A stretch of 64,000 nucleotides of DNA from Azolla caroliniana (GCA_043228905.1 JBHGNT010000009.1:13764001-13828000), one strand, 5' to 3'; positions 2,352 to 18,192 are shown, counted from the first letter of the stretch. The notes: generated from the letters alone by a model not told the origin. Made by a program: numbers and translations.

Positions 2352-2388
2352 AACACCGGGTCATTTGAAACAATTAATATGTCGCATT
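2352..2388 (+). repeat. Left TIR AACACCGGGTCATTTGAAACAATTAATATGTCGCATT
   Basis: Reverse complement of 9725-9761 with 4 mismatches. Confidence 0.92.
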
Positions 2389-2810
2389 ATGAGAACACTA
2401 CATCGAAAAAGGGCACAAAAGCACGCAGTTTTCAAAAAGACACGATGCATGCGTAAAGCTTTTCAGAAAAGGTGGGAAAATATATTGAATTTCAACATGA
2501 CTACCACTTTGAGGCATAAGTAAAATGCCTCCAAAAATACATCACCAAAATTACAAAATAATGTACAACATGTCTACCAGTTACAATCATACATATTCGT
2601 GAGTTTACATCCAAAACAAATTTACAAAGTTTCCGATCATGTAGTAAAACAATCCCCAGCTTGAACCAAACCAATATATTAAGACATGTCTGATGGACTA
2701 GAAGAGCATTCTGACGTCTCATCCTCATCATCAGTGGCAATCAAAGCATTATCCTCATCCAATTCCAACCCAACATCTTTGTGGTTATGAGAATTGCTTC
2801 TAGTTATTCT

Positions 2811-5351
2811 CTATATTTCGTTTGACACCATGTTTGGGATTTTCTCCTTTATTATCTTGATAGTTGCTTGTCTTAGATGACCTGATTTTGTCAATGAGAA
2901 GTCATATACTAGTATGTCAACACGGTCTAGTGCGAGAGTAGCCGTGCTCGGTATATTCTTTCTTCTTCTCTTTCTGCTTGAACATCCGACATCCTTAACC
3001 ATCTCTAAAGAATACTTTCCTGTAAATGCATCACGTGAATTTGTCTGATACCAGTGGACTACTATTGACTTTGTCTGACTACTTTCTTCATCCCTTACTA
3101 ATTCAATAATTTTTGCAATCCAAAATGGATGGCCCAAGGTATCGTCCCCTGCTAATGTTGCAACCAACATTCCCACTTGTAGTTCTTGCAAATTACCTTG
3201 CCATCTTGCCTCAACAGTACGTGACTTTCTTGGTCCCACATAAATATTTCTTTGTAGTGGCCGAACTAAATAATGAAGCTCCATATTATTCGATTGTTGG
3301 TGATGAGTCTGCGATATCGTTGATGTCATCCCAATGTTCCATGTGAATGGGATACGGATTGGCCATAAACCGGCGATGTAATTATCTAAAATGGTGCGTT
3401 GATGGGTGAAGAAAATCTCCCACCATTCAACATCCTCATCACCGGCATACTTCTTAGTCCGATCAATATTATTTTGTTTCTCTGCTAGACATCTCAACCA
3501 ATATGCCCTTTGTTCATCAATAGTACTATTTGGTGCTACATTTTTACGATCATCATATGGCATTTGTTGTGCACCATGTAGAGGTTCATCTAGGATATGA
3601 AGAAGGAGCCTACAACCTTCTTGGGGCTCCCATTGTGCACTAGATGAGTATTGTTTCGCAAACAACACCGTCATCTTCAGGTGGGCCGATCTTTGTTTTA
3701 TGAGGAAGACATGGTTGAAACTTATATTATTAAGAGGTGCAAGCACCCTACCTTTAGTCCCGTCACTATCCATGCAGAAACGTTTAAAGTCATATACTTC
3801 TTCCAAGTGTTGTACTTCAGGCTTTGGTGTATATGCTTCACTAATCAATTTGGATAGCGTGGGAAGTGTGAAAGCATTACAGCGAGCAAGTTTCTTTGAG
3901 AACCTACTGAACATTTGATCTATGTGATCATGGGTATGACCAACCAACAAGAAGTTAACCTTTATCTTTTTAAATATGCCCCTCTCTACTAGCATGCTTA
4001 GATAGCCGAAGACAGTTGAGTTCTTATTCTCTCTTGTTGTGTTGTCTAGTTGCACATATAGAACTGGCGGGAGTATACCTGACCATGAATGCAATACCCT
4101 GTGCATGACAGTGACAGTAAGATTAGGGTCGTTGTGGATATTGGGATAAGTTAAGAACACTTGCGGTCTTATAGTTTGACAATATGTCAAACAACCCACT
4201 AGATGCATTTGCACGAGACACTCATCTCCAATATCCTTGGGGAGTCTTTGAAAATGCGGCAAACAAGTTTTCTTTTGATCCATGCCGTCAATAATCATGC
4301 ACATATACTTTTCGGGAGATTGAAACACTTTTTGTTGGTGATGCATAGCCTTAGTACGTTCCAATGCCTGACTTTCACGATGTTCTTTTAACAGGTTCTT
4401 GTAATTCTTGATCTCTACATCTGATTTTCCACCCTTGGCCATACTTTTTAAACTCGCACATATTGAGCAGACTCCCATTCGCACCTTTCGTGGGATAACC
4501 ACGTTATTAAATTGTAACCTCCATAGTCGATTAAAATGCATGTACTGTATGTAAGGCTCAACATCGGAAGACATGTCGTCCTTGTACGATTGGTAAACTT
4601 CCCTTCGAGTAAAGTTATCTGACAAATGAAGTATTCCTGTCGTTGGCATAACTTCGCACTGTTTTGAAAAATATACCTCCATCCACCTAATTGCCTGTTG
4701 CCCAATTTGACCCTTACATCCAGAACCATTTTGATCGAACTGTACCCAGGAGCCCTTCAGAAGTCGCTCTTGAACTCGTTGCAGCCGCATATTTCCAATG
4801 CTATGAGTGATTTTAAAAGCTGCTCGACAACACTTGGTTTTTAGTCCAAGGAAATATTCAACTTGCGTTGAATTAGGCCCTGCTTTGTGATCCAATTTAA
4901 GTTGCATATGCGAAAGAAGAAATGTATCTTGCTCTTCCCCATTAAGCGACAAGTATTTTTGTCGTGTTTCACGTAACCTTGACTTTCCATAAGTTGATAG
5001 ACAGAGATTCGCACAACACGATTTGTTCAAGTCGCATAGAAGTTGATGATCAGAACATAAGAAACTAAATCTCTTTTCACTAACTTGTCGAGGAACTCTT
5101 TTAAATGCTAGACGTTTAGTAATGCTATTGTTATCTATCGACGAAGAATCGTCCGCTTGTAAGCTTGCATGAAGAGGGCCATCAACAGGATCAATTGAAA
5201 ACAGAGAATTCGAAGTACTAGGAGCCACACTTTTCTGTTTAAGCCGCGAATGTTTTTTGTGGTCGTACTCTTCTATTGAGAAATACGAGTTGTCTGACAA
5301 TGAAAAGGGGGCAATAGAAAAAAGAGATGTTCTACTTGTAGAAGAAGACAT
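2811..5351 (-). CDS. Intact 846-aa DDD transposase (Sola1-like, GHTHxxID family) with Cys-rich N-terminal region and a C-terminal beta-barrel-like domain
   Basis: Single open ORF inside the TIRs. Putative catalytic motifs IIDGMDQ, VQLDNTTRENKN and FLLVGHTHDHIDQMFS; Cys motifs CCANLC and CSICASLK. Confidence 0.85.
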   Translation of the reverse strand: MSSSTSRTSLFSIAPFSLSDNSYFSIEEYDHKKHSRLKQKSVAPSTSNSLFSIDPVDGPLHASLQADDSSSIDNNSITKRLAFKRVPRQVSEKRFSFLCSDHQLLCDLNKSCCANLCLSTYGKSRLRETRQKYLSLNGEEQDTFLLSHMQLKLDHKAGPNSTQVEYFLGLKTKCCRAAFKITHSIGNMRLQRVQERLLKGSWVQFDQNGSGCKGQIGQQAIRWMEVYFSKQCEVMPTTGILHLSDNFTRREVYQSYKDDMSSDVEPYIQYMHFNRLWRLQFNNVVIPRKVRMGVCSICASLKSMAKGGKSDVEIKNYKNLLKEHRESQALERTKAMHHQQKVFQSPEKYMCMIIDGMDQKKTCLPHFQRLPKDIGDECLVQMHLVGCLTYCQTIRPQVFLTYPNIHNDPNLTVTVMHRVLHSWSGILPPVLYVQLDNTTRENKNSTVFGYLSMLVERGIFKKIKVNFLLVGHTHDHIDQMFSRFSKKLARCNAFTLPTLSKLISEAYTPKPEVQHLEEVYDFKRFCMDSDGTKGRVLAPLNNISFNHVFLIKQRSAHLKMTVLFAKQYSSSAQWEPQEGCRLLLHILDEPLHGAQQMPYDDRKNVAPNSTIDEQRAYWLRCLAEKQNNIDRTKKYAGDEDVEWWEIFFTHQRTILDNYIAGLWPIRIPFTWNIGMTSTISQTHHQQSNNMELHYLVRPLQRNIYVGPRKSRTVEARWQGNLQELQVGMLVATLAGDDTLGHPFWIAKIIELVRDEESSQTKSIVVHWYQTNSRDAFTGKYSLEMVKDVGCSSRKRRRKNIPSTATLALDRVDILVYDFSLTKSGHLRQATIKIIKEKIPNMVSNEI

Positions 5352-5561
5352 TTGAGGGAGTCTAACTGTATTCTAAAACCTTCTTTTGAGAAAATTAAGG
5401 AATGCTAAAGCCTAACTATATAACTACCCGAACACTTAGATTAACTATATTATTTTCCGAAATTTTCCTAGAAAACAAATAATTAAAAATTATTTTTTAT
5501 TTTAAAAGGAATGCTAAAGTCTTCTATATAAGGAGGTTAAAAATTTCATTTTCATTATCAC
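5352..5561. promoter_or_regulatory. Putative bidirectional promoter between the transposase and the methyltransferase gene
   Basis: 210-bp AT-rich spacer between divergent ATGs. AAGGAATGCTAAAG occurs at 5397-5410 and 5506-5519, each followed by CTATATAA. Confidence 0.5.
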
Positions 5562-8500
5562 ATGAAAGAATCCATCGAGCTCAGAGCACAGGCCAATTTT
5601 CGAGCACTCAGAAGCACATCGTCGACAGCACTACCTCCGGCACGAACCATGAACAAGGGAAAGAAAATCGTCAGGTTAGTAATATTCTTTACATTTTTTA
5701 AGATTCCTAAAGATTCCTTAAAGATTCCTTTCCTCAACACATAGAAATTTTATTTTATTTTGTACAACGAACTTGGAAAGCAATTCTGAAAGGCAGGACC
5801 TTCAACCAAAATCCGATGCAGTGCATCGGATTTTGGTTGAAAAAAATGTTGTTTTTGCGATAAAAAACTATCGCATGGGACCATAAAATTGACGTAATTT
5901 AAATGATAATTTGCGTGATTTAGATAAAATTGTACGTTGTTTCTATGTTTTCACCAACGTTTTTAATTTCAGTGAACCCAGACAAAAAGTTCCTTCATTT
6001 AGATTGAAGATTCGATCTCCGACAAAACGACAATCTGGCTCCTTCATCAAGGACACGAGTAAAAAGATTTTATTTGACTCAACGGGGGAAGGAGGATCCA
6101 AGTCATCTGTGGCTACTACCAAAATCAACAAAGGTATTACGCAAGAGGAGAAAACGGTTGAGGTGAAATATAAGGATTACCCCGAACTTGAATGGTGTCT
6201 CTCTTATGTCGAGGAGGATGGGGTGCTGTTATTGATAACGGCAAAATCGGACGGGGAAGGGAAACTTCAGCTTGGAAAAACATTTAATTACATGCATGTA
6301 ACCAAGCTAGAGTACGAAGACATTGAATCTACAAGTATTTTAATCGACGTCTCGAGCTCAGTTGGCAATAGGCGATTGCGACTTGGTGAGGGAAACCTAG
6401 TACCCGAATCTTGCAATCCCAAGGCTTTGCGTAAAGACCTGCAAACGAAAAATAACTTGTTGGTAGCTCTTTGGCCATACGTGACAGGAGAGATGATGAC
6501 TGGTGAAGCAGAAACTGCACCGAAAAAGTCTAGGAAGACAAATCCTGCTCAAAAGAAATATACTAAACGACCACGACCGAAGAAGAAGAAGAAGAAATAT
6601 TAGAGTTCGTGGAAGAAGAAGACGACCAACAAGTCGACGTCGTGGCTCCAGGCGGACAACTATCTTCTGGTGTCCTGACGTCAGAACAAAATAAAATAAG
6701 AGAAAATATTGTGAAGACTAAACTTGTGCGCAAGGGCCAACTATTTCATTTGCCCATTACTTCTATCCAAAGGCCCCCCATTGACCCTGTGACTGGAAGA
6801 CGTCCCTTGGAAATTAGGGAGCCGCACTCCGTCCATGTGCAAAACCTGAAAAGCAAAATGAAAATCAATCCTCACGCTACTGTGGTGCCATTTTTGGTAA
6901 TGGTTGATCAAGAACAATGCCCAACAGTAGCAGATTTTAAGTATAGCTCTGCAGACGATTACACATACTATGTAATCGGAGGATCACATTCGGCCGAAGC
7001 TCGACGACAGCTTGTCAAAGAATATCCTCTCACGCCGTTCTTCAAGTACGCCGAATGTAAGGTATATGCAGGACTAACTCACGAGGAGGCGAAGCTGCTC
7101 GCATGGGACCATAACAATGACAACGATTATAGGTAAAAGATGTCATGTATAGAGAGGATAAGATTTTTTCATCATGAATACTTGGATGCCTTGAATCGTT
7201 TTGGTCCAAGATTGTGGCCTGGATTGCGACGCTAGTGTGGGATCTCCAAGACAAAATATTCTCTATGTGGGAGCGGAAAGAAGTCAAGGGGGAAAGATCA
7301 AAAAAGGGAAGAATTGCTCCACAAGTTGAGATGAAATCAAAGACCAAGGGAAAAAGCGACTTGGTAATCGAGGAGTTAGTAGAGGACATGAAACTTTTAC
7401 CTTGGAGATCATTACAAGGTATCAAAGATGATAGATTGTTAATATCCGTGCTATCTCGAGTGGTCGCCAAGGAATTTAGTTTGGACGAGATGGTAACAAA
7501 CTTGCAAAAGTAAGTGTTTATAGTATATACCTTTTCATGAAAGTCTTCAATTATTTTGAATATCTTATTTCTAATTTCATATTGATTGTGCAGTCACAAG
7601 GTATACATGAAGATTCAGGAGTAGATGATGCAAAAACTGAGTTTACCGACATGGGAAGAAGTTGAACAAGCTTGTCTGATAACTTCTTCCTACAAGGCAT
7701 TGGAGGAATATTTTATTGTATTTAGAGAATGGGTATGTGTCTTTTGAATGTTGATATGTTAGAAACTAATGTTCCCTGCTAACAACAATGACACTTGCAG
7801 AAACCATCAAAATCGAAAAAGAACAACGACAATAATGACGGTATTCCAACGGCCTTCATCACGCACTTAGAACGTGCGAAATATGAGAAGAGAATGACCA
7901 AAGGGAAGGAAATGGAACTGCCCGAGGATTCGGAGACTATAAAGAGTTTTTTGCATAGGTCTGATCCTTTCAAACAGCTTCATTATAGTGTTTTCAATGG
8001 CGAAGTATCCCAGATGCTCGAACTGTTATCGAGAAGGCACTACACTTTGCTGATAGCTGACATACCATATGGTTTCCGTATTGCGGGATCAACATATGAT
8101 GATGTGCCTTTCAGATCGAGAAAATGGTAAAGGATTTCGCAGAACTGACATTGGCCCCCTTGTGGAGGATAGTCATATTTCATAGCATGGGGCAATCACT
8201 GTCAGTCACAACAACTTTGAAGTCCCGTTGTCATGCCACTGAACACATGCATTGGTGCGTTATAGTTCGCTTTTACTCATTACAGTACTTCTTATTATAT
8301 GTACACATTTACACCTCTAATACTTGATTTTCTTTCTCTATAGGATCAAAACAAATATTACACATAGCCCTGGCGATCGAATGGTTAGTGCGGTCGAACA
8401 TTTTTGTGTGGGCTACTATGATTCAATTACAAAGAAGAAGGCTAGAGCACATGTCAATGAGCGTAACGTGGTTAACTACATCATGTGCCCAGCTGTAACC

Positions 8501-8998
8501 AAAAAATTAAGACATGTGTCAGGGGATAAAAGTATGGTGAACCCTTATAAAAAACCTCAAAGATTGATCAACCGCCTCATAGAGCTCTTCTCGAATCCAG
8601 ATGATTGGGTCCTAGACTTGTTCTCTGGCACAGGTATAATATATATATTTAATTTCAATCCTGTCGATCAAGTTTAAGACGTTACTTCTTATATATACTT
8701 GTTTGTGTTCATGCGACCATTAGGTACAACGACAGCTTGTGCATTGAAGATGTTTAGAAACTGTGTTGCATTGGAGAAGGACCCTGCTCAAGTTAACTTC
8801 ATCAAAATGAGGATCACAGGAATCTGGGACTGTCCAGATCAGGATCAAGAAGTCGGAGCAAAACACATCAACAAGACAGAGATGTTCCAGATGACACATA
8901 CATCAAATTCGGGAGAGCTTGGAGATGACACGAATGAAAACAGTCTAGAACAATCAGCGCCGGAGGAGCCTGCTCTACCTGATTTGCTTATAGATTGA
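5562..8998 (+). pseudogene. ParB/Srx-like domain fused to a beta-class N6-A/N4-C DNA methyltransferase; exons 5562-5674, 5973-7509, 7594-7732, 7801-8254, 8344-8633, 8724-8998
   Basis: Five GT-AG introns, all phase-compatible. ParB-like segment (..VPFLVMVD..YYVIGGSHSAEARRQL..CKVYAGLTHEEAKLLAWDHN). Motif IV LLIADIPY; HWIKTN..AVEHF; NPYKKPQRLINRLIELFSNPDDWVLDLFSGTGTTTACALKMFRNCVALEKD (motifs X/I/II). In-frame stops at 7134, 7233 and 7622; frameshifts near 6580, 7235 and 8115. Confidence 0.85.
5801..5841. repeat. Perfect 20-bp inverted repeat with 1-nt spacer, in intron 1
   Basis: TTCAACCAAAATCCGATGCA-G-TGCATCGGATTTTGGTTGAA. Confidence 0.95.
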
Positions 8999-9724
8999 TG
9001 TAGATGGCGTAATGTAAAAATTGAGGATTTTGAGACATAATGTTCACCATCACTTCATATTATATTTGTATATGAGAACATCTGTAATTGTTTATCATTT
9101 AATTAAATTCACCTGTTCATAATTTCCCTTTTTAATCATTATTGGAACCGTAGTTTGTATTTACATATAATTGGTCACCATGCTCTTCTTCAGTTTGAGA
9201 TATTAACATGATATTGTAATTTCTCATTTCCATTAGCATGACTGTATATGAAAAGGCGAATGTTTTTGATAATAAGAGGTTTTTAGTTACCTACGGTTCA
9301 AGTCTACTGGTTCCACATAGTATAAATGAATGTCGTACGTAATTGTTACTCTTACCAATTACATTGTCATGAACTATATGACATTATACAATGAAACTAT
9401 TGATATACCCGTCCAACAAGTGGGGTACTACTTTATTCCTAAACCCAAAACCACATATTTATAATTACGGTTTATGTAGTTTTACTCTACAATTTGAATA
9501 TGGATACCAATTTTAGAACTTTATATTGAACCAAGTCTTCAATTGTGCTCCATGATATGCAAATTGACACGAATGTGGACACATATACAATTTAGTAATT
9601 GCTAGGTTTTTTTTGTTCTATATTTAACCATCAAGTCGCAAAAGGGGTACGCATGCATCGTATATTTTCGATATCAGGCTAAAATAGGGTACTTTTCTAC
9701 ATCTGGCCAACTATGCCAAAAGAG

Positions 9725-9761
9725 AATACGACATATTACCTGTTTCAAATGACCCGATGTT
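9725..9761 (-). repeat. Right TIR
   Basis: Its reverse complement is AACATCGGGTCATTTGAAACAGGTAATATGTCGTATT. Confidence 0.92.
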
Positions 9762-9949
9762 CTCTGCATTTCTTCCCCTTTCCATACAATTTCCTTGCAG
9801 CATTATGCTTCTTCGTAGGCTCTTTGATAGAAACATAAGAACTTAGAAGTATAGCAACAATGCATTATTAAAAGTTCATACACAATTAGCATTACTGTTC
9901 ACACAGTCAAGGGGAGCTGAGCTAGGAGAATTTGTTTGAAGCAACACGT

Positions 9950-11299: not shown

Positions 11300-12240
11300 G
11301 TTCTAACTACAATGTTACAAATATTATCAGTACTGAATCAAGTGGACATTTAAGACCTTAAGTACTAAAAAATCAGTCTTGTTCCAACTAATCACCAGGG
11401 AATACACATGTAACAGTAATATTAGTACTAAAACAACAAAGAGGAACTTGAGGACACAATACAGAACCATCTGGACATGTTGTCGATATTTGTTCGGTAC
11501 TAAACAAAAGACCTACATGCCTATTTGTTCGGTCATCCAGAGCCTATTTGTTTGGTTCTCCTATTTGTTAGTACACATACAAGTGATACAACTAAACATT
11601 TAAGACGTTCGGTACTAAATCAACTCAACACCAAGGGATACAATGTAATCAGTAATGTTAGTACTAAAACATCAATCAAGGAACTTGAGAGAACAATATT
11701 GAACCACTTGCACATGCATATTAAAGCGTGGTATTGACCAATGTTATTACTAAACAACCAAGACCTTCATGCGTATTTGTTCGGTCATCCTGAGCCTAAC
11801 TTGAGTGGACACAAAACGTACAATGTAATGGACAGTGTTAGTACTTATACAAGTTATACAACGAATCAATTAAGACATTTAGTACTAAATAATCAGTTTG
11901 GAATCAACTGATCACCAAGGAATACAATGAAATCAGTAATGTTAGTACCTAATCCTCCAACAAGGAACTTGAGGGAACATTACACAACCACCTGGACATG
12001 CATATTTCATGTAATGAACAATGTTAGTACTAAAAAACCTAGACCTTCATGCCTATTTGTTCGGTCATCCAGAGCCTAAGCCAAGTGGACATAGAAAGTA
12101 CAATGTAATGAATAATGTTAGTGCACATGCAAGTTATACAACTAAACATTTAAGATCCTCAATACTAAATAAGATTCACATTGTCAACTGATCACCAAGG
12201 AATACAATGTAATCAGTAATGTTAGTACTGAATCATGTAA
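11300..12240. repeat. Intronic tandem repeat, unit about 250-280 bp, about 3.5 copies
   Basis: TTGTTCGGTCATCC(A/T)GAGCCT recurs near 11525, 11777 and 12057; rich in TAGTACTAA. Confidence 0.75.
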
Positions 12241-13577: not shown

Positions 13578-15719
13578 ATGTATTTGTCGCGGTCTTTTCC
13601 TATGAGCAAAAATCGACTTCACAGTATGTATTCGATATAGATGTGAATTGTTTCTCTACCGCCATCTCACTAGATGAAACTTCTTCCAAATCGGTGAGCA
13701 GTGCTTGCATTCTTGTTTGCATGGAAGCAATGCAACGCAACAATCGATGTTCATGCTTTTCTGTTAGTGTAGCTCTTTCTTTTGCAATCTGTTTAGTCAA
13801 CATATATGTCCTAGCTAGGATTTCAATGTGAGAGGTACCCTCAGACTTCATAGTAGTGTTGGTACTTGAGGATCCTCTATAATGTGATGATCGATGATGA
13901 GCAAAATCTTCCCAAACAACTTCAATGCCACCATGGAGTTCAGAGGCAAATGCACGTGCAAAAACAGTTCCTACCTCATTGTTTAGGATATGTTTTATAT
14001 CATAAACTTGTTCATATCGTGACTTTAGTTCAGTGATATAATCCTTCTTCAATTGAGTGAGGTAAAAACCTCTCCTTGTCTCCGGTTGTGATGAGCCCCA
14101 TGTTTTGATCACCCACATGTCTAGGTCTTCATTAGTGTCAGGTCGTGCACGAAGGAAATATCCCCATCCTAACTTTCTACCTCGAAGGATGTTTGCGAAC
14201 ATCTTCTTGCCTAAGATGTTGACAACTTAAACCTCCCTCTGGTGGGGGTCATCTTAATTTCTTTGATGGGGGTCCTTTTTCTTTCCTTGCATGGTGTGTT
14301 GACATTTTCTTTGACCATTTTCTTCTTCGTGGGTGTCTTCCTTGTCATTTGAGTCCTATCTGTCTTCTTCACCTCACACACAGAATAATAGTAAATAACA
14401 ATTGATCAATCACAACTGTCTTTTTTCATCATATGATTAAATCACGCATAATAAGAATAAAAATGAGATATAACAACCCTAAACATACTTCAAGTTGGCT
14501 CAAACACAAGATTCATGCATGTACAAGTCTCTTTTGAAAGTGCACATAGGAGGAAAGACAAAAACATCAATAACAAAGATAAAACCTACAACATAATGTT
14601 AACTCCCGATACACAACATATACATGCTAAACCATGGAAAATCATTGCAACGTACCATCATAGAACCATCTTCCAATATGTCAACATGTACCAAATTCTA
14701 AATCATGCAATAAATGACATATGCATGTAAAACACTCTCAATTTCTAGCATATGCATGTACAAGTGTCTCAAATGATCAAGGGAGAACAACACAAACAAT
14801 AACAACAAAAACCTAACATGTAGTAGAATGTGAAGGAAAGCCTAAAGCATGATTACCTTTTCAGATGTCGTTAGGGTTGCAGATAGTAGATTTACCTTTC
14901 TGAAGTCCTTGCAGAGGGGCCACGTTTGAAGCATGGGTTGCAAGCAAACGGACACACCAGGTAGAGGGAACCCAAGGACTTGAGAACACTTGGAGGTAGA
15001 GCAAAGCAGAGGTCACAGCCAACAGAGGGGACACGGCCAACAGAGCAGAGGTCGATGTCATTAGGACACGGTGTGCACAGAACACCTAACAGTGAGGGAG
15101 AACAAGGTCAACAGAGGGAGAGAGAACATGGCCAACCCTAGAGAGGTTGAAAGACCTATGTAGAAGGTGGAAGAGAGACAGAGAGGGGGAGAGGAGGTAT
15201 GAATGACGAGCAATGACACACTTGGAGTCTGCAGAGACCTGTACAGAAGGTGGAAGAGAGACGGAGAGGGGGAGAAGAGGTACGAACCTCGGGAATCAGT
15301 GAGTTGAAGGGGGAAGGAGAGAGAGAGAGGGAGAGAGACTAACTGACTAACTGACAGTTCAAGATGAACATATGTGCCAAGAGCGAGAGCGAGAGAGAGA
15401 CATACTTACTATATTCATAATTGAGTGACTACTCAAGATCTTGTACAGTTAAGATCTTCGTACAACATTACCTAGGACTCTAACCCAACAACCTCAAATG
15501 AAATGGACAGTTGAACACAAACATAAGTTATAATTGTGGAAGGATGTGTAATGTTTTTTTCATATTTGAAATCCATTTTCATTGAATGTGACTTTTAATT
15601 TTAGCACAAAATATGGTCAACATTTTTAACCCAAATATTGGATTATTTTTCTTTCCTCCTCATCGAATTAGTACTAAAATTTTGGCCAAAAGTTGGTACA
15701 CTGCAACGTGCTTTCACCC

Positions 15720-18192
15720 TTAGCATAATAAGTAGTAGCAATTTGTACAATTTCTGTCTCATCTTCTGTTAAGGAGCCATCTTCTCTCTATTAGTTGTTT
15801 AATCCCTACTGCCGACCATTTCCGTGGAACTACGGAAAAAAATGTCTTGTTTACTCAGTCGCCTACTTGTGTCCATTTTGAAGCTGAAGCTTGATATTGA
15901 AATTGTAAAGTGATGTCCTCGATATTTTTGAATTCCCATTTTGCATTATGTAAAACATTTGTTCATTCACACAATGGATCCCTTTCTTGAAAATGTTGCA
16001 ATGATGTCAAGACGCGATGCATATTGATAATTTTCTACGCATATCTTTCCCTTTTCCCCTATGCCCAAGAGATTAAGAAACTACTAATATTTGATATTGC
16101 CAAGGCCACATTATCTTCCACTTTTCCAATTTGCAATAAAGTTTGTCTCCATATATACATAACTTTTTCAGTAATTATGAATTTTGTAAACAATTCCGGT
16201 GGAATCCTTAATCTCCCTTGTTGCTTAAGTTTTTTCCCATCATTAAGTTGTAATACAACTGGGGCATGATTGGAGAAAGTCGTATCTGGATAAATGTCAA
16301 CACTCCCTCCTATCTCCGCAAATAAATCATCAACATAAATCCTATCAATTTTTGAAAGATTTGCCCCATTTAATCTTCTATCAAACCTAGAAAACAGTAA
16401 AGAATTATGCAATTTTCCAAAGGATGGTAAATGCCAAACATCCAACAACTGTCTACTTATAGTAAATTTTTTCCATGCGGATAATTCTAAACCATGCACT
16501 TTTGCTCCACCTTCACCACTCCTATCCTCAGGATCCTCAATCATATTAAAATCTCTTGCTATACACCAATGATCTACAATTGGCAATGAACTATCCAATT
16601 CAATCCACATCTTTAATCGTTCTCTAGAATAATTAGGAGTGCTACAAATTCAGGAAGCCAACCTTTTAATTATCAAATTTCATGAGAACATATTGTGCTC
16701 TTCCTAAGAACAAATTTCCTACATCCAACATCTTTACTTGCCATATATCACGAATAGCCATACATAATCCACCTTGAAATTGTGTTGATCCATATCCTGG
16801 AACCCACAACATTTCCCAGTTTCCAGGCAGTAATGAACCATAGAGTTTAGTATGCCTTTCATTTAAATGATGTTCTTGTAACATCACTATGTCCACTTGT
16901 CCAATTATACATTTATGCAACTCTTGTCGAAATCTCCGTTTATATTGTTTACATAAGGATCCCCTAAGACCCTGAACATTCCAAGAAATAATCTTCATAT
17001 TTACACAAATTTGGACAATAATCTTTTTTCTTTCAAACATCAATTCCTGTCTTCTTGAGACATATCTTGAGACTTAATCATTCTTCTAAAAGAGATGTGG
17101 TCTTTACCAAATGCATTAGTCTACTTATGTACTCTCTGAATGGAAATCTTACTATCACTTCCTTGAAAATGTTCAACTAATGATTTCGTGGAAGTTCTCC
17201 AATCATTAGTATCCTTCATGAAAGGATTATGATCCTTCGGCAAATGCTTGGACATGGATCTTGTCCACCTTCCTTCAAATGAAGGCAAGGGTCCAATGTC
17301 AACTACCCGATTTTTAGTTTGTAGTTCCCCTACAATCTCTTGTTCCATTCATTGTTTCCAATACATTAATCGGAATGATAGCATTCTCAGCATATAAAAC
17401 CATTTCACGACTACGTCCTTCCTGATGTTCTTTATTATATACTTGAACATTAAGTTTATGATCATTTGGTCTTGATTGTATTCCATCCACAATCTCCTTG
17501 CTAGGGCGCCTATTGCGAGGTACTTCCATATTTCCCAAATCTTCAATCATTTGAGTTTGTCCATCTTCTACGTTGCTTAACAAACCTTAGGTTGCCATTT
17601 GAATTTACCAAGACTTGTTTGCGGCTCATCATTTACAACATGTATCGGCCCTTTCCTTGACAAGGAACATTCTTTAGCTAAATGTCCCATTATTTTACAT
17701 AAAAAACATTGATTTGGTAACCCAACATATAATTTTTTTTGTTTCTTTCCACAGCCCCCATTTTCCAAACAAGGTAATTTCACATATTCCGACAACGGTT
17801 TTCCTCTAGTACATAATAATTTAATTGTTGATATTCCAAATATTTGTGCGTCTTTGTTATGTATATAGGCATCTGATACAACTCCAATTAAACCCCCTAA
17901 TTGATGCAATAGATGATGACATTCCATAGGCAATCCCAGAAAACTCAAGTTAAAACTAAAAAATCATGTTGGGTCTCTCTGATAGGGTCAAAACCATGTT
18001 TCCATTCCTGAAATTTAACCCATGCTCCTTGTATATCAACAAATGTCATAGCAAGTAATACTTGCACAGATGCCTCATCTTGAAACTCCACATGATAATA
18101 GCCTCTTCCTAGAAATTGCACATCTTCAATATGACCAATTTTAGCCTGCAATCGTGCCTATAGCAAATGCGTCTCTTGACGATTAGGCATCC
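15720..18192 (-). mobile_element. L1-type LINE fragment (ORF1 with CCHC knuckle; ORF2 AP-endonuclease), degenerate
   Basis: CFLCKIMGHLAKEC; MKIISWNVQGL, MLQEHH, ARDFN, SKIDRIY, FSNHAPV; many stops. Confidence 0.9.

Follow-up and report, generated by a model that had tools for sequence, protein, structure and literature searches.

A young, inactivated copy of a fern TIR transposon family carrying a predicted ParB-methyltransferase gene

Boundaries of the element and its transposase gene

We analyzed a 64,000-nt stretch of the genome of Azolla caroliniana (GCA_043228905.1, JBHGNT010000009.1:13764001-13828000), hereafter the window. A TIR-bounded cut-and-paste transposon occupies positions 2352-9761 of the window. 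The 37-bp TIRs and the CTCT TSD described in the initial annotation were both found: the left TIR, starting with AACACC, is located at 2352-2388 (plus strand) and the right TIR at 9725-9761 (minus strand), the two 37-nt arms being 89% complementary, and identical CTCT tetranucleotides are present at 2348-2351 and 9762-9765. A 4-bp TSD is characteristic of the Sola superfamily; here it is known from one copy only, because the flanks of skim-assembly contigs were uninformative. A 21-nt terminal word had two sites in the window, both at the TIR ends (0 expected). Homology with L004, an independent full copy 98–99% identical to ours, begins exactly at 2352 and stops exactly at 9761, and the TIR is also kept in L007, a family at 75% identity. 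The locus is a real TIR DNA transposon, and the copy is young, being about 1% distant from the family consensus. We consider the identity and anatomy of the element to be firmly established.

The transposase gene, belonging to the DUF7869 family, was found on the minus strand (2679-5351; ancestral frame of 890 codons). Its product matched the profile PF25273 with an E-value of 3.7e-52, and 74 relatives were detected in ferns, Riccia, and Cymbomonas. DUF7869 is the Pfam name for the transposase core; in the Atlas this family is spread over the eukaryotes and is faintly linked to DDE_Tnp_ISAZ013. Three candidate catalytic residues (D355, D436, and D478), as well as a CxxC...H motif, were invariant or nearly so in 14 relatives, which suggests a DDD catalytic role for the three aspartates. 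The transposase had been annotated as intact, but a premature TAG at 2811-2813 (formerly CAG) has removed the 44 C-terminal residues, leaving an open part at 2811-5351 of 846 aa versus 890 aa in the relatives, and 14 missense changes have accumulated as well. Judging from the orientation of the two genes, the divergent intergenic region (5352-5649) presumably contains their promoters.

The ParB-methyltransferase gene and its domains

In intact members, the accessory gene consists of six exons with about 968 codons, and its product comprises, in this order, an unassigned N-terminal region, a domain of the ParB/sulfiredoxin fold that is extended by helices, and a beta-class methyltransferase. 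In the Azolla copy the gene is on the plus strand. A putative exon 1 (5650-5675), read from the sequence as an ATG and 8 codons with the donor AG/GTTAGT, is conserved within this family only (L003, L004). Exon 2 (5973-7509) encodes the N-terminal region, the ParB/Srx-fold domain (~6672-7260), and the helical extension; its equivalent is an intact 567-aa ORF in L003, L004, and L005. Exon 3 (7594-7732) contains 46 codons. The methyltransferase domain starts in exon 4 (7801-8244), which carries motif IV, D-I-P-Y (8059-8070); exon 5 (8344-8632) encodes the core of the domain with the sequence N-P-Y-K-K-P-Q and most of motif I, F-S-G-T-G, which is split between 8620-8632 and 8724-8725. Exon 6 (8724-8998) contains the end of the domain (A-L-E-K-D), an acidic tail, and the stop codon (8996-8998). 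The AG/GT signals of introns 2-5 were conserved in five other families at every testable boundary, which argues for the divergent six-exon gene proposed initially.

The accessory gene of this copy, for which a spliced product had been proposed, is not intact. Using L004 as the reference, we identified in it two nonsense codons and four deletions: a 1-nt deletion in exon 2 (6576/6577), a nonsense TAA in the same exon (7134-7136), followed by a 100-nt deletion (7234/7235), a TAG replacing TTG in exon 3 (7622-7624), a 10-nt deletion in exon 4 (8110/8111), and a 75-nt deletion in exon 6 (8895/8896). Because of these lesions, a spliced product with both domains is impossible from this copy, which is dead and performs no function itself.

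The ParB-like domain claimed in the initial annotation is supported by the predicted fold and not by Pfam. An AF2 model of the corresponding part of L003 (L003:1162-1839) had a pLDDT of 87.4, and its top 50 Foldseek matches in the PDB were nearly all of the ParB/Srx type (ParB, Noc, KorB, sulfiredoxin, PadC, and SbnI), with a probability of up to 1.00. The best match was ParB of M. xanthus (E = 7e-5), and the matches with ParB and Noc covered about 200 columns, including the helical part. No ParB family was detected above its cut-off in Pfam, where the sole match was DUF6551 (E = 0.007–0.008, below its cut-off), nor did a profile of 17 homologues match ParB among PDB sequences. The stretch equivalent to the arginine-rich, nucleotide-binding GxxRxxA box of the CTP-dependent ParB proteins reads V-I-G-G-S-H-S-A-E-A-R, with G103, G104, and H106 invariant or nearly so; we take it to be nearer to the GGCHR type of sulfiredoxin than to GERRxRA.

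The expected profile hits were thus obtained for one of the two domains: PF01555 (N6_N4_Mtase) matched exon 5 with 36.3 bits versus a cut-off of 26.7, while the ParB part was left without a Pfam match above cut-off. The corresponding ORFs of L002, L004, L005, L008, and L009 carry PF01555 as well, as do homologues from Chara and JGI. In all homologues motif IV is located upstream of motif I, which is the beta-class order, as had been noted for DIPY and FSGTG in this copy. A predicted model of the homologue P0110 (P0110:500-789, pTM 0.80), with which the fern exons align colinearly, matched CcrM, M.BceJIV, M1.HpyAVI, MboIIA, and RsrI with E-values of 6e-13 to 5e-9 and a probability of 1.00. Thus, according to its motifs and predicted folds, the cargo encodes a predicted bacterial-type beta-class amino-DNA methyltransferase fused to a ParB-like domain.

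Motif IV of the fern proteins reads D-I-P-Y, whereas the Chara and JGI proteins have D-F-P-Y or D-L-P-Y. Compared with the canonical (D/S)-P-P-(Y/F), the D, the second P, and the Y are kept and the first P is always replaced. Activity of the methyltransferase is not assured because of this replacement. A catalytically dead domain, with the role of the protein limited to DNA binding or scaffolding, nevertheless seems improbable to us: the canonical PP does read I-P, F-P, or L-P, but the variant D-[I/F/L]-P-Y is conserved family-wide, from the Chara proteins to ferns, together with the other methyltransferase motifs; the SAM-binding motifs F-S-G-[ST]-G and P-Y-Q-K-P are intact; and nowhere in the gene is constraint stronger than in the methyltransferase exons (pN 0.04–0.10).

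As for the modified base, N6-adenine is the probable target, judging from the aspartate of motif IV and from the P0110 model, whose best fold matches are all N6-adenine enzymes. The enzyme might instead write N4-methylcytosine, since PF01555 spans both specificities, structures of bdelloid N4CMT appear among the fold matches of P0110 (ranks 24–33), and the palindrome described below is CG-rich. We regard this as rather unlikely: N4-cytosine specificity has been linked with S in motif IV (Iyer et al.), and the known eukaryotic 4mC enzymes carry this S (TSPPY in Marchantia DN4MT1), but motif IV of the fern proteins begins with D.

Conservation of the two-gene layout

The same two-gene layout was found in L001 (Ceratopteris), L002, L004/L005, L007, L008, L009, and L010, that is, in six fern families of the element including this one (Ceratopteris is among the five others) and in one metagenomic eukaryote, L010. 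The fern families differ by 20–45% in protein sequence, and the position and orientation of the accessory gene are the same in all of them. In full copies the gene is located inside the TIRs, and it lies on the strand opposite to that of the transposase within one TIR pair, as in Sola1-1_Ec32 of Ectocarpus. Protein relatives were found in Chara, Riccia, and Ginkgo. These findings, together with the conserved splice sites, bear out the proposal of a plant TIR family that stably carries a ParB-methyltransferase.

No stop codons were found in the exon matches of other families. Identities at the first, second, and third codon positions were 0.91, 0.99, and 0.60 for exon 5 and 0.86, 0.94, and 0.34 for exon 4, i.e., second positions were more conserved than first positions and third positions far less conserved than both; pN was 0.03–0.3 versus a pS of 0.6–1.0. 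These values show the pattern of strong purifying selection on the accessory gene.

We considered, and rejected, the possibilities that this copy alone had captured the gene from a host or a bacterium (Pack-type) and that the gene is a chance neighbour. Either would be extremely improbable for a gene kept in the same position and orientation across six fern families and the distant eukaryote L010, and within the TIRs of full copies. On these comparisons, the accessory gene is not a captured host gene; it has long belonged to the transposon lineage, as an ancient component maintained by selection. Our preferred explanation of the locus as a whole, which we hold as probable, is a dead copy of an autonomous TIR family with a selected cargo, a methyltransferase that may be self-addressed.

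Palindromes, possible function, and related elements

A perfect 20+1+20 palindrome with the core CCGATGCA-G-TGCATCGG was found inside intron 1 (5801-5841). Family-specific palindromes of the form TCGATGC-N-GCATCGA, with TCGATAC in one family, cluster beside the accessory gene, and equivalents were detected in L009, L002, L008, and L001; half-sites numbered from 4 to 53 versus 0.3 to 1.6 expected and in every case adjoined the accessory gene at its 5' end. None were found in L010, and L007 has another arrangement. In this family only, half-sites are also subterminal: CGATGCA at 2443-2449 (plus strand), 92 nt inside the left end and within a 53-nt subterminal inverted repeat (I1), is mirrored by TGCATCG at 9654-9660 (minus strand), at a distance of about 101 nt from the right end. 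We consider the palindromes candidate binding sites of the ParB-like domain; alternatively, they could serve the transposase or belong to the promoters.

Clustered between the genes and, in this family, repeated as half-sites roughly 100 nt from both termini, the palindromes are probably what the ParB-like domain recognises. The methyltransferase would thereby be recruited to the DNA of its own element, and the resulting N6-adenine mark may tune transcription or transposition of the element. We put forward this self-targeted 6mA mechanism only tentatively. Somewhat more speculative still is its extension to an active land-plant lineage (in ferns and, judging from protein homology, in liverworts, Ginkgo, and the alga Chara), in which ParB/parS-like addressing would place 6mA on the promoter and the termini of the element itself, the palindromes would co-evolve with each family, and 5mC silencing would be bypassed or counteracted.

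The same sites can be read in another way. Dam methylation reports the replication state for IS10 and Tn5, and by analogy with IS10/Dam, the ParB-methyltransferase might mainly be a transposition cofactor or timer, and not an epigenetic device against silencing; its methylated sites would report the replication state. It might also be a ParB/Srx NTPase or nuclease in the transpososome. The half-sites at the divergent promoter and near the two termini would suit such a role, and the conserved GG-x-H is similar to that of ParB/Srx-fold proteins that bind nucleotides. However, a methylation target inside the palindrome is an assumption, and the subterminal half-sites are restricted to this family. 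We rate this role as not very likely, although the present findings do not separate it from self-marking.

The presence and importance of 6mA and 4mC in plant DNA are disputed, and to our knowledge, no dedicated writer of these marks is established in vascular plants. The lineage provides a conserved candidate 6mA/4mC writer under purifying selection, which ferns contain in many copies and which has relatives in Ginkgo, liverworts, and Chara. A candidate writer with a candidate binding site makes the question of 6mA/4mC in plants testable.

No description of the architecture was known to the initial annotation; however, it has been published for Sola1-1_Ec32 of the brown alga Ectocarpus, where a gene for a ParB-like domain and an N4C/N6A methyltransferase lies opposite the transposase strand and its protein is suggested to bind and modify its own transposon (Dinatale et al. 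2025, Genome Biol 26:320, PMC12477816). Green and red algal precedents are among the works which that paper cites (PMC12477816), and transposon-borne ParB-methyltransferases are, therefore, already known. Our comparison relies on the published description of Sola1-1_Ec32 rather than on its sequence: the two-gene opposite-strand layout is shared, but the Ectocarpus element is 21.5 kb in length and encodes a 1104-aa protein, whereas the land-plant element has 7.4–7.6 kb and about 968 aa. The present analysis adds the occurrence in land plants, the D-x-P-Y variant, conserved introns, the evidence of selection, and the palindromes; the published account of the Ectocarpus element does not mention such candidate binding sites.

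In Bostrychia moritziana, the Plavaka accessory genes PAG2 and PAG3 are likewise DNA-modification genes borne by a transposon; in PAG3 a ParB-like domain is located at the N-terminus, and tandem inverted-repeat arrays adjoining this gene are proposed as its binding sites (Petroll et al. 2025, bioRxiv 10.1101/2025.02.11.637652). The likeness to our element extends to the transposon-borne modification genes, the ParB-like domain, and the repeats beside the gene. In contrast, their transposase is Plavaka/CACTA-like, the fusion partner of ParB is a 2OG oxygenase, and a separate protein with a SET domain contains the N6-adenine methylase. KDZ/Plavaka transposons of basidiomycetes carry TET/JBP genes (Iyer et al. 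2014, as cited in Petroll et al. 2025) and likewise represent a DNA transposon lineage stably carrying a DNA-modifying enzyme, but this enzyme is an oxygenase acting on 5mC and the transposase is another one.

Bdelloid N4CMT and Marchantia MpDN4MT1a/b are also eukaryotic enzymes of bacterial-type amino-methyltransferase ancestry, the former being a fold match of the P0110 model. They differ from the fern proteins in being host genes with S-P-P-Y that write 4mC, and neither has been reported as ParB-fused or transposon-borne. Beta-class adenine methyltransferases and ParB-methylase fusions of phages and plasmids share the methyltransferase family and fold. At E <= 1e-3, neither the ParB part nor the two parts in combination found a match among phage and plasmid records; the phage enzymes matched the methyltransferase part at 24–30% identity, and the eukaryotic gene is distinguished from them by its spliceosomal introns and D-[I/F/L]-P-Y.

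Element Boundaries and Transposase

The TIR arms occupied positions 2352–2388 (left) and 9725–9761 (right) of the window; each was 37 nt long and 89% complementary to the other, and CTCT stood directly 5′ of the left arm and directly 3′ of the right one. The 21-nt terminal word of the TIRs had no further occurrence in the 64-kb window (0 matches expected). ENA contig L004 (7,870 bp), a full copy of the element, was 98–99% identical to the window over precisely 2352–9761 and unrelated beyond these positions; therefore, the element and its ends are real. This independent alignment is the strongest support for the element boundaries and agrees with the 37-bp TIRs and CTCT TSD of the initial annotation. 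No matching 4-mers were found flanking L004, L005, L007, and L002 (repeat consensus contigs, low-coverage assemblies), and no empty-site paralogue of the element flanks was present among the sequences searched.

Inverted motifs of the TTAGTACTA type were repeated on either side of the element (735–1093, 11418–11446, and 15653–15681), which is consistent with its nesting within another, larger TIR element. The ORFs flanking the element at 9.8–17 kb encoded nothing relevant; a LINE-like endonuclease fragment (Exo_endo_phos) was located at 16669–17043. Between 18000 and 52000, the G+C content rose from about 37% to 45–53%, a composition unlike that of the transposon-rich first 18 kb. In the copy L003/L006, the flank beyond the left TIR (in window orientation, the first ~108 nt of L003) resembled in translation exon 3 of a different member of the ParB-methyltransferase family, containing WEQVTEDYPLTSSYKALSEYF; either insertion into a related element or a join made in the assembly could account for this.

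The minus-strand ORF at 2811–5351 (846 aa) matched Pfam DUF7869 (E = 3.7e-52), and an Atlas search returned DUF7869 clusters only. Its relatives numbered 74, the named ones originating from Ceratopteris, Adiantum, Riccia, and Cymbomonas; on this evidence, the element most likely resides in a fern. In an alignment with 14 diverse relatives, D355, D436, and D478 as well as a CxxC...H motif were invariant or nearly so; the three conserved aspartates fit a DDD enzyme. The transposase had been described as an intact DDD enzyme, but it is not intact: relatives at 95–99% identity are 890 aa long, a CAG to TAG change at 2811–2813 has cost the window transposase its acidic 44-residue tail, and 14 missense changes are present besides this premature stop.

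Structure and Predicted Domains of the ParB-Methyltransferase Gene

The second gene, on the plus strand and divergent from the transposase, has a predicted layout of six exons: a putative exon 1 at 5650–5675, followed by exons 2 (5973–7509), 3 (7594–7732), 4 (7801–8244), 5 (8344–8632), and 6 (8724–8998), which total about 968 codons in L004. All searches, alignments, and dN/dS counts for this gene were run per exon, the pieces being left unjoined. AG and GT were found at the homologous position for every testable boundary of introns 2–5 in five other families, and intron lengths were alike across the families compared (68–95 nt), supporting the six-exon model first annotated. An alternative exon 3 acceptor past the TAG at 7622–7624 was rejected; L004 and another fern contig, L002, read through in-frame with TTG and ATT, respectively.

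Exon 5 matched PF01555 with a score over the curated cut-off. The motifs followed the beta-class order: motif IV (I-A-D-I-P-Y-G-F), then P-Y-x-K-P-Q, motif I (L-D-L-F-S-G-T-G), and A-L-E-K-D. The fold was taken from an AlphaFold model of residues 500–789 of the homologue P0110, with which the fern exons align colinearly; the model matched CcrM, M.BceJIV, M1.HpyAVI, MboIIA, and RsrI (E = 6e-13 to 5e-9). The beta-class methyltransferase expected at the outset is thus borne out by profile, motif order, and fold. A word-indexed search with the methyltransferase region of P0110 as the query returned one further protein only. Since motif IV carries D and the best fold matches are all N6A enzymes, adenine would be the target; rotifer N4CMT was a lower-scoring fold match, and a 4mC-writing enzyme is unlikely. 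The first proline of motif IV is replaced family-wide. Because ferns have D-I-P-Y, and Chara and metagenomic relatives D-F-P-Y or D-L-P-Y, this replacement is a family trait and not a lesion. That the protein is a catalytically dead binder seems improbable.

The ParB-like domain of the initial annotation was supported by predicted fold, while the expected ParB sequence match was not obtained. Pfam searches on the exons and 17 homologues gave no ParB, only a sub-threshold DUF6551 match (E = 0.007), and ParB was not found by phmmer or profile searches of PDB sequences. However, for a confident model of L003:1162–1839 (pLDDT 87), the top 50 PDB matches were nearly all of the ParB/Srx type (ParB, Noc, KorB, sulfiredoxin, PadC, and SbnI), those to ParB and Noc extending over the helical region after the N-domain. 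The domain contains a conserved box, V-I-G-G-S-H-S-x-E-A-R.

Conservation of the Cargo and Decay of the Window Copy

The head-to-head layout, with the transposase and the ParB-methyltransferase on opposite strands, was also present in Ceratopteris richardii (L001) and in four fern assembly contigs (L002, L007, L008, and L009) at 55–80% protein identity; L007 shares its TIR sequence with the window element. A metagenomic eukaryote (L010) had the same layout without introns, its 789-aa protein being encoded by a single ORF. This recurrence contradicts a one-off capture of the gene. No stop codons occurred in any exon match across the families compared, and identity by codon position followed the order pos2 > pos1 >> pos3: exon 5 gave 0.91/0.99/0.60 against L009, exon 4 gave 0.86/0.94/0.34 against L007, and the transposase gave 0.83/0.88/0.59 against L007. 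Nei–Gojobori counts gave pN of 0.03–0.3, pS being saturated at 0.6–1.0, as anticipated by the dN/dS < 1 proposed for other copies. The codon-position pattern and pN far below pS therefore show that purifying selection has acted on the ParB-methyltransferase gene no less strongly than on the transposase, and the comparisons indicate that the cargo is stable in the transposon lineage.

Chara braunii has proteins with both domains, among them P0078 (GBG86584.1, 1825 aa), in which two ParB-plus-methyltransferase units stand in tandem. At the Chara locus L011, no transposase homologue was found within 10 kb. ParB-domain relatives were present in Riccia and Adiantum, and a Ginkgo biloba gene model (P0258, Gb_10123, 758 aa) with 43% identity over the ParB region carries PF01555; therefore, the family reaches gymnosperms.

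Three separate ORFs of the window gene correspond to an uninterrupted 567-aa ORF in L003, L004, and L005. Relative to L004, the window copy lacks 1 nt at 6576/6577, 100 nt at 7234/7235, 10 nt at 8110/8111, and 75 nt at 8895/8896, and has TAA for CAA at 7134–7136 and TAG for TTG at 7622–7624; thus, some of the intron-like breaks in the window gene are lesions. The two copies differ by 78 substitutions (about 1%), and at 47 of these sites the window copy carries a G>A or C>T change; the substitutions in coding sequence comprise 15 synonymous, 38 missense, and 3 nonsense changes. This pattern indicates neutral decay following insertion. Deamination of 5mC probably helped the decay, which would fit a silenced copy. 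Judged by its sequence, the window copy is dead.

Published Relatives and Candidate Binding Palindromes

The initial annotation regarded the architecture as undescribed. However, the 21.5-kb Sola1-1_Ec32 of Ectocarpus carries, on the strand opposite the transposase, an accessory gene whose 1104-aa product combines a ParB-like domain with an N4C/N6A DNA methyltransferase domain (Dinatale et al. 2025, PMC12477816). It resembles the fern element in this arrangement and differs in its host. Dinatale et al. propose that proteins of this kind bind the transposon that encodes them and modify it, and they cite examples from green algae (Iyer et al. 2011) and red algae (Petroll et al. 2025). Iyer et al. 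2016 (PMC4738411) likewise list adenine methyltransferases of eukaryotes that are joined to ParB-type domains or descend from phage ParB loci. In a tblastn search of P0110 against phages and plasmids, the methyltransferase part alone was matched (24–30% identity). The fusion may have come from bacteria or phages. No paper on such an element in ferns or other land plants was found in the searchable literature. The element is real and its family interesting, with the window copy dead and the design already published for algae; the land-plant occurrence, the evidence of selection, the conserved D-x-P-Y variant, and the candidate binding palindromes merit follow-up.

These palindromes, perfect or near-perfect with the core TCGAT(G/A)C-N1-3-G(C/T)ATCGA, lie in the first intron or between the two genes, at the 5′ side of the ParB-methyltransferase gene. 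They are family-specific (TCGATGC-N-GCATCGA, with TCGATAC in L008). The window has one copy with 20-nt arms (5801–5841), L009 two (20–42 and 63–101), L002 about three (8782–8864), L008 about 10 (3933–4693), and Ceratopteris L001 about 25 in two arrays (5522–5880 and 7910–8389). Half-site counts were 4 to 53 vs 0.3 to 1.6 in shuffles. The window element also has a single half-site near each end, 92 nt in from the left and about 101 nt in from the right, the two in mirror orientation; in L007, the half-site lies within wider inverted repeats, and no repeated palindromes were found in L010. The palindromes are candidate binding sites of the ParB-like domain, but they may just as well be sites for the transposase or promoter elements. 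In Plavaka elements of red algae, Petroll et al. reported inverted-repeat arrays adjoining a ParB-oxygenase gene and suggested them as binding sites of its product.

Domain content, domain conservation, and palindrome position are direct observations. In the mechanism that we tentatively propose, the ParB-like domain would dock on the palindromes, the methyltransferase would then methylate adenine on or near the element, and this mark would affect the transcription or transposition of the element. A role as a Dam/IS10-like replication timer or a transpososome cofactor has a low probability. In Ceratopteris, the locus is flanked by simple tandem repeats, long (AT)n among them (L001 2516–2652 and 2691–3698), which give spurious long ORFs.
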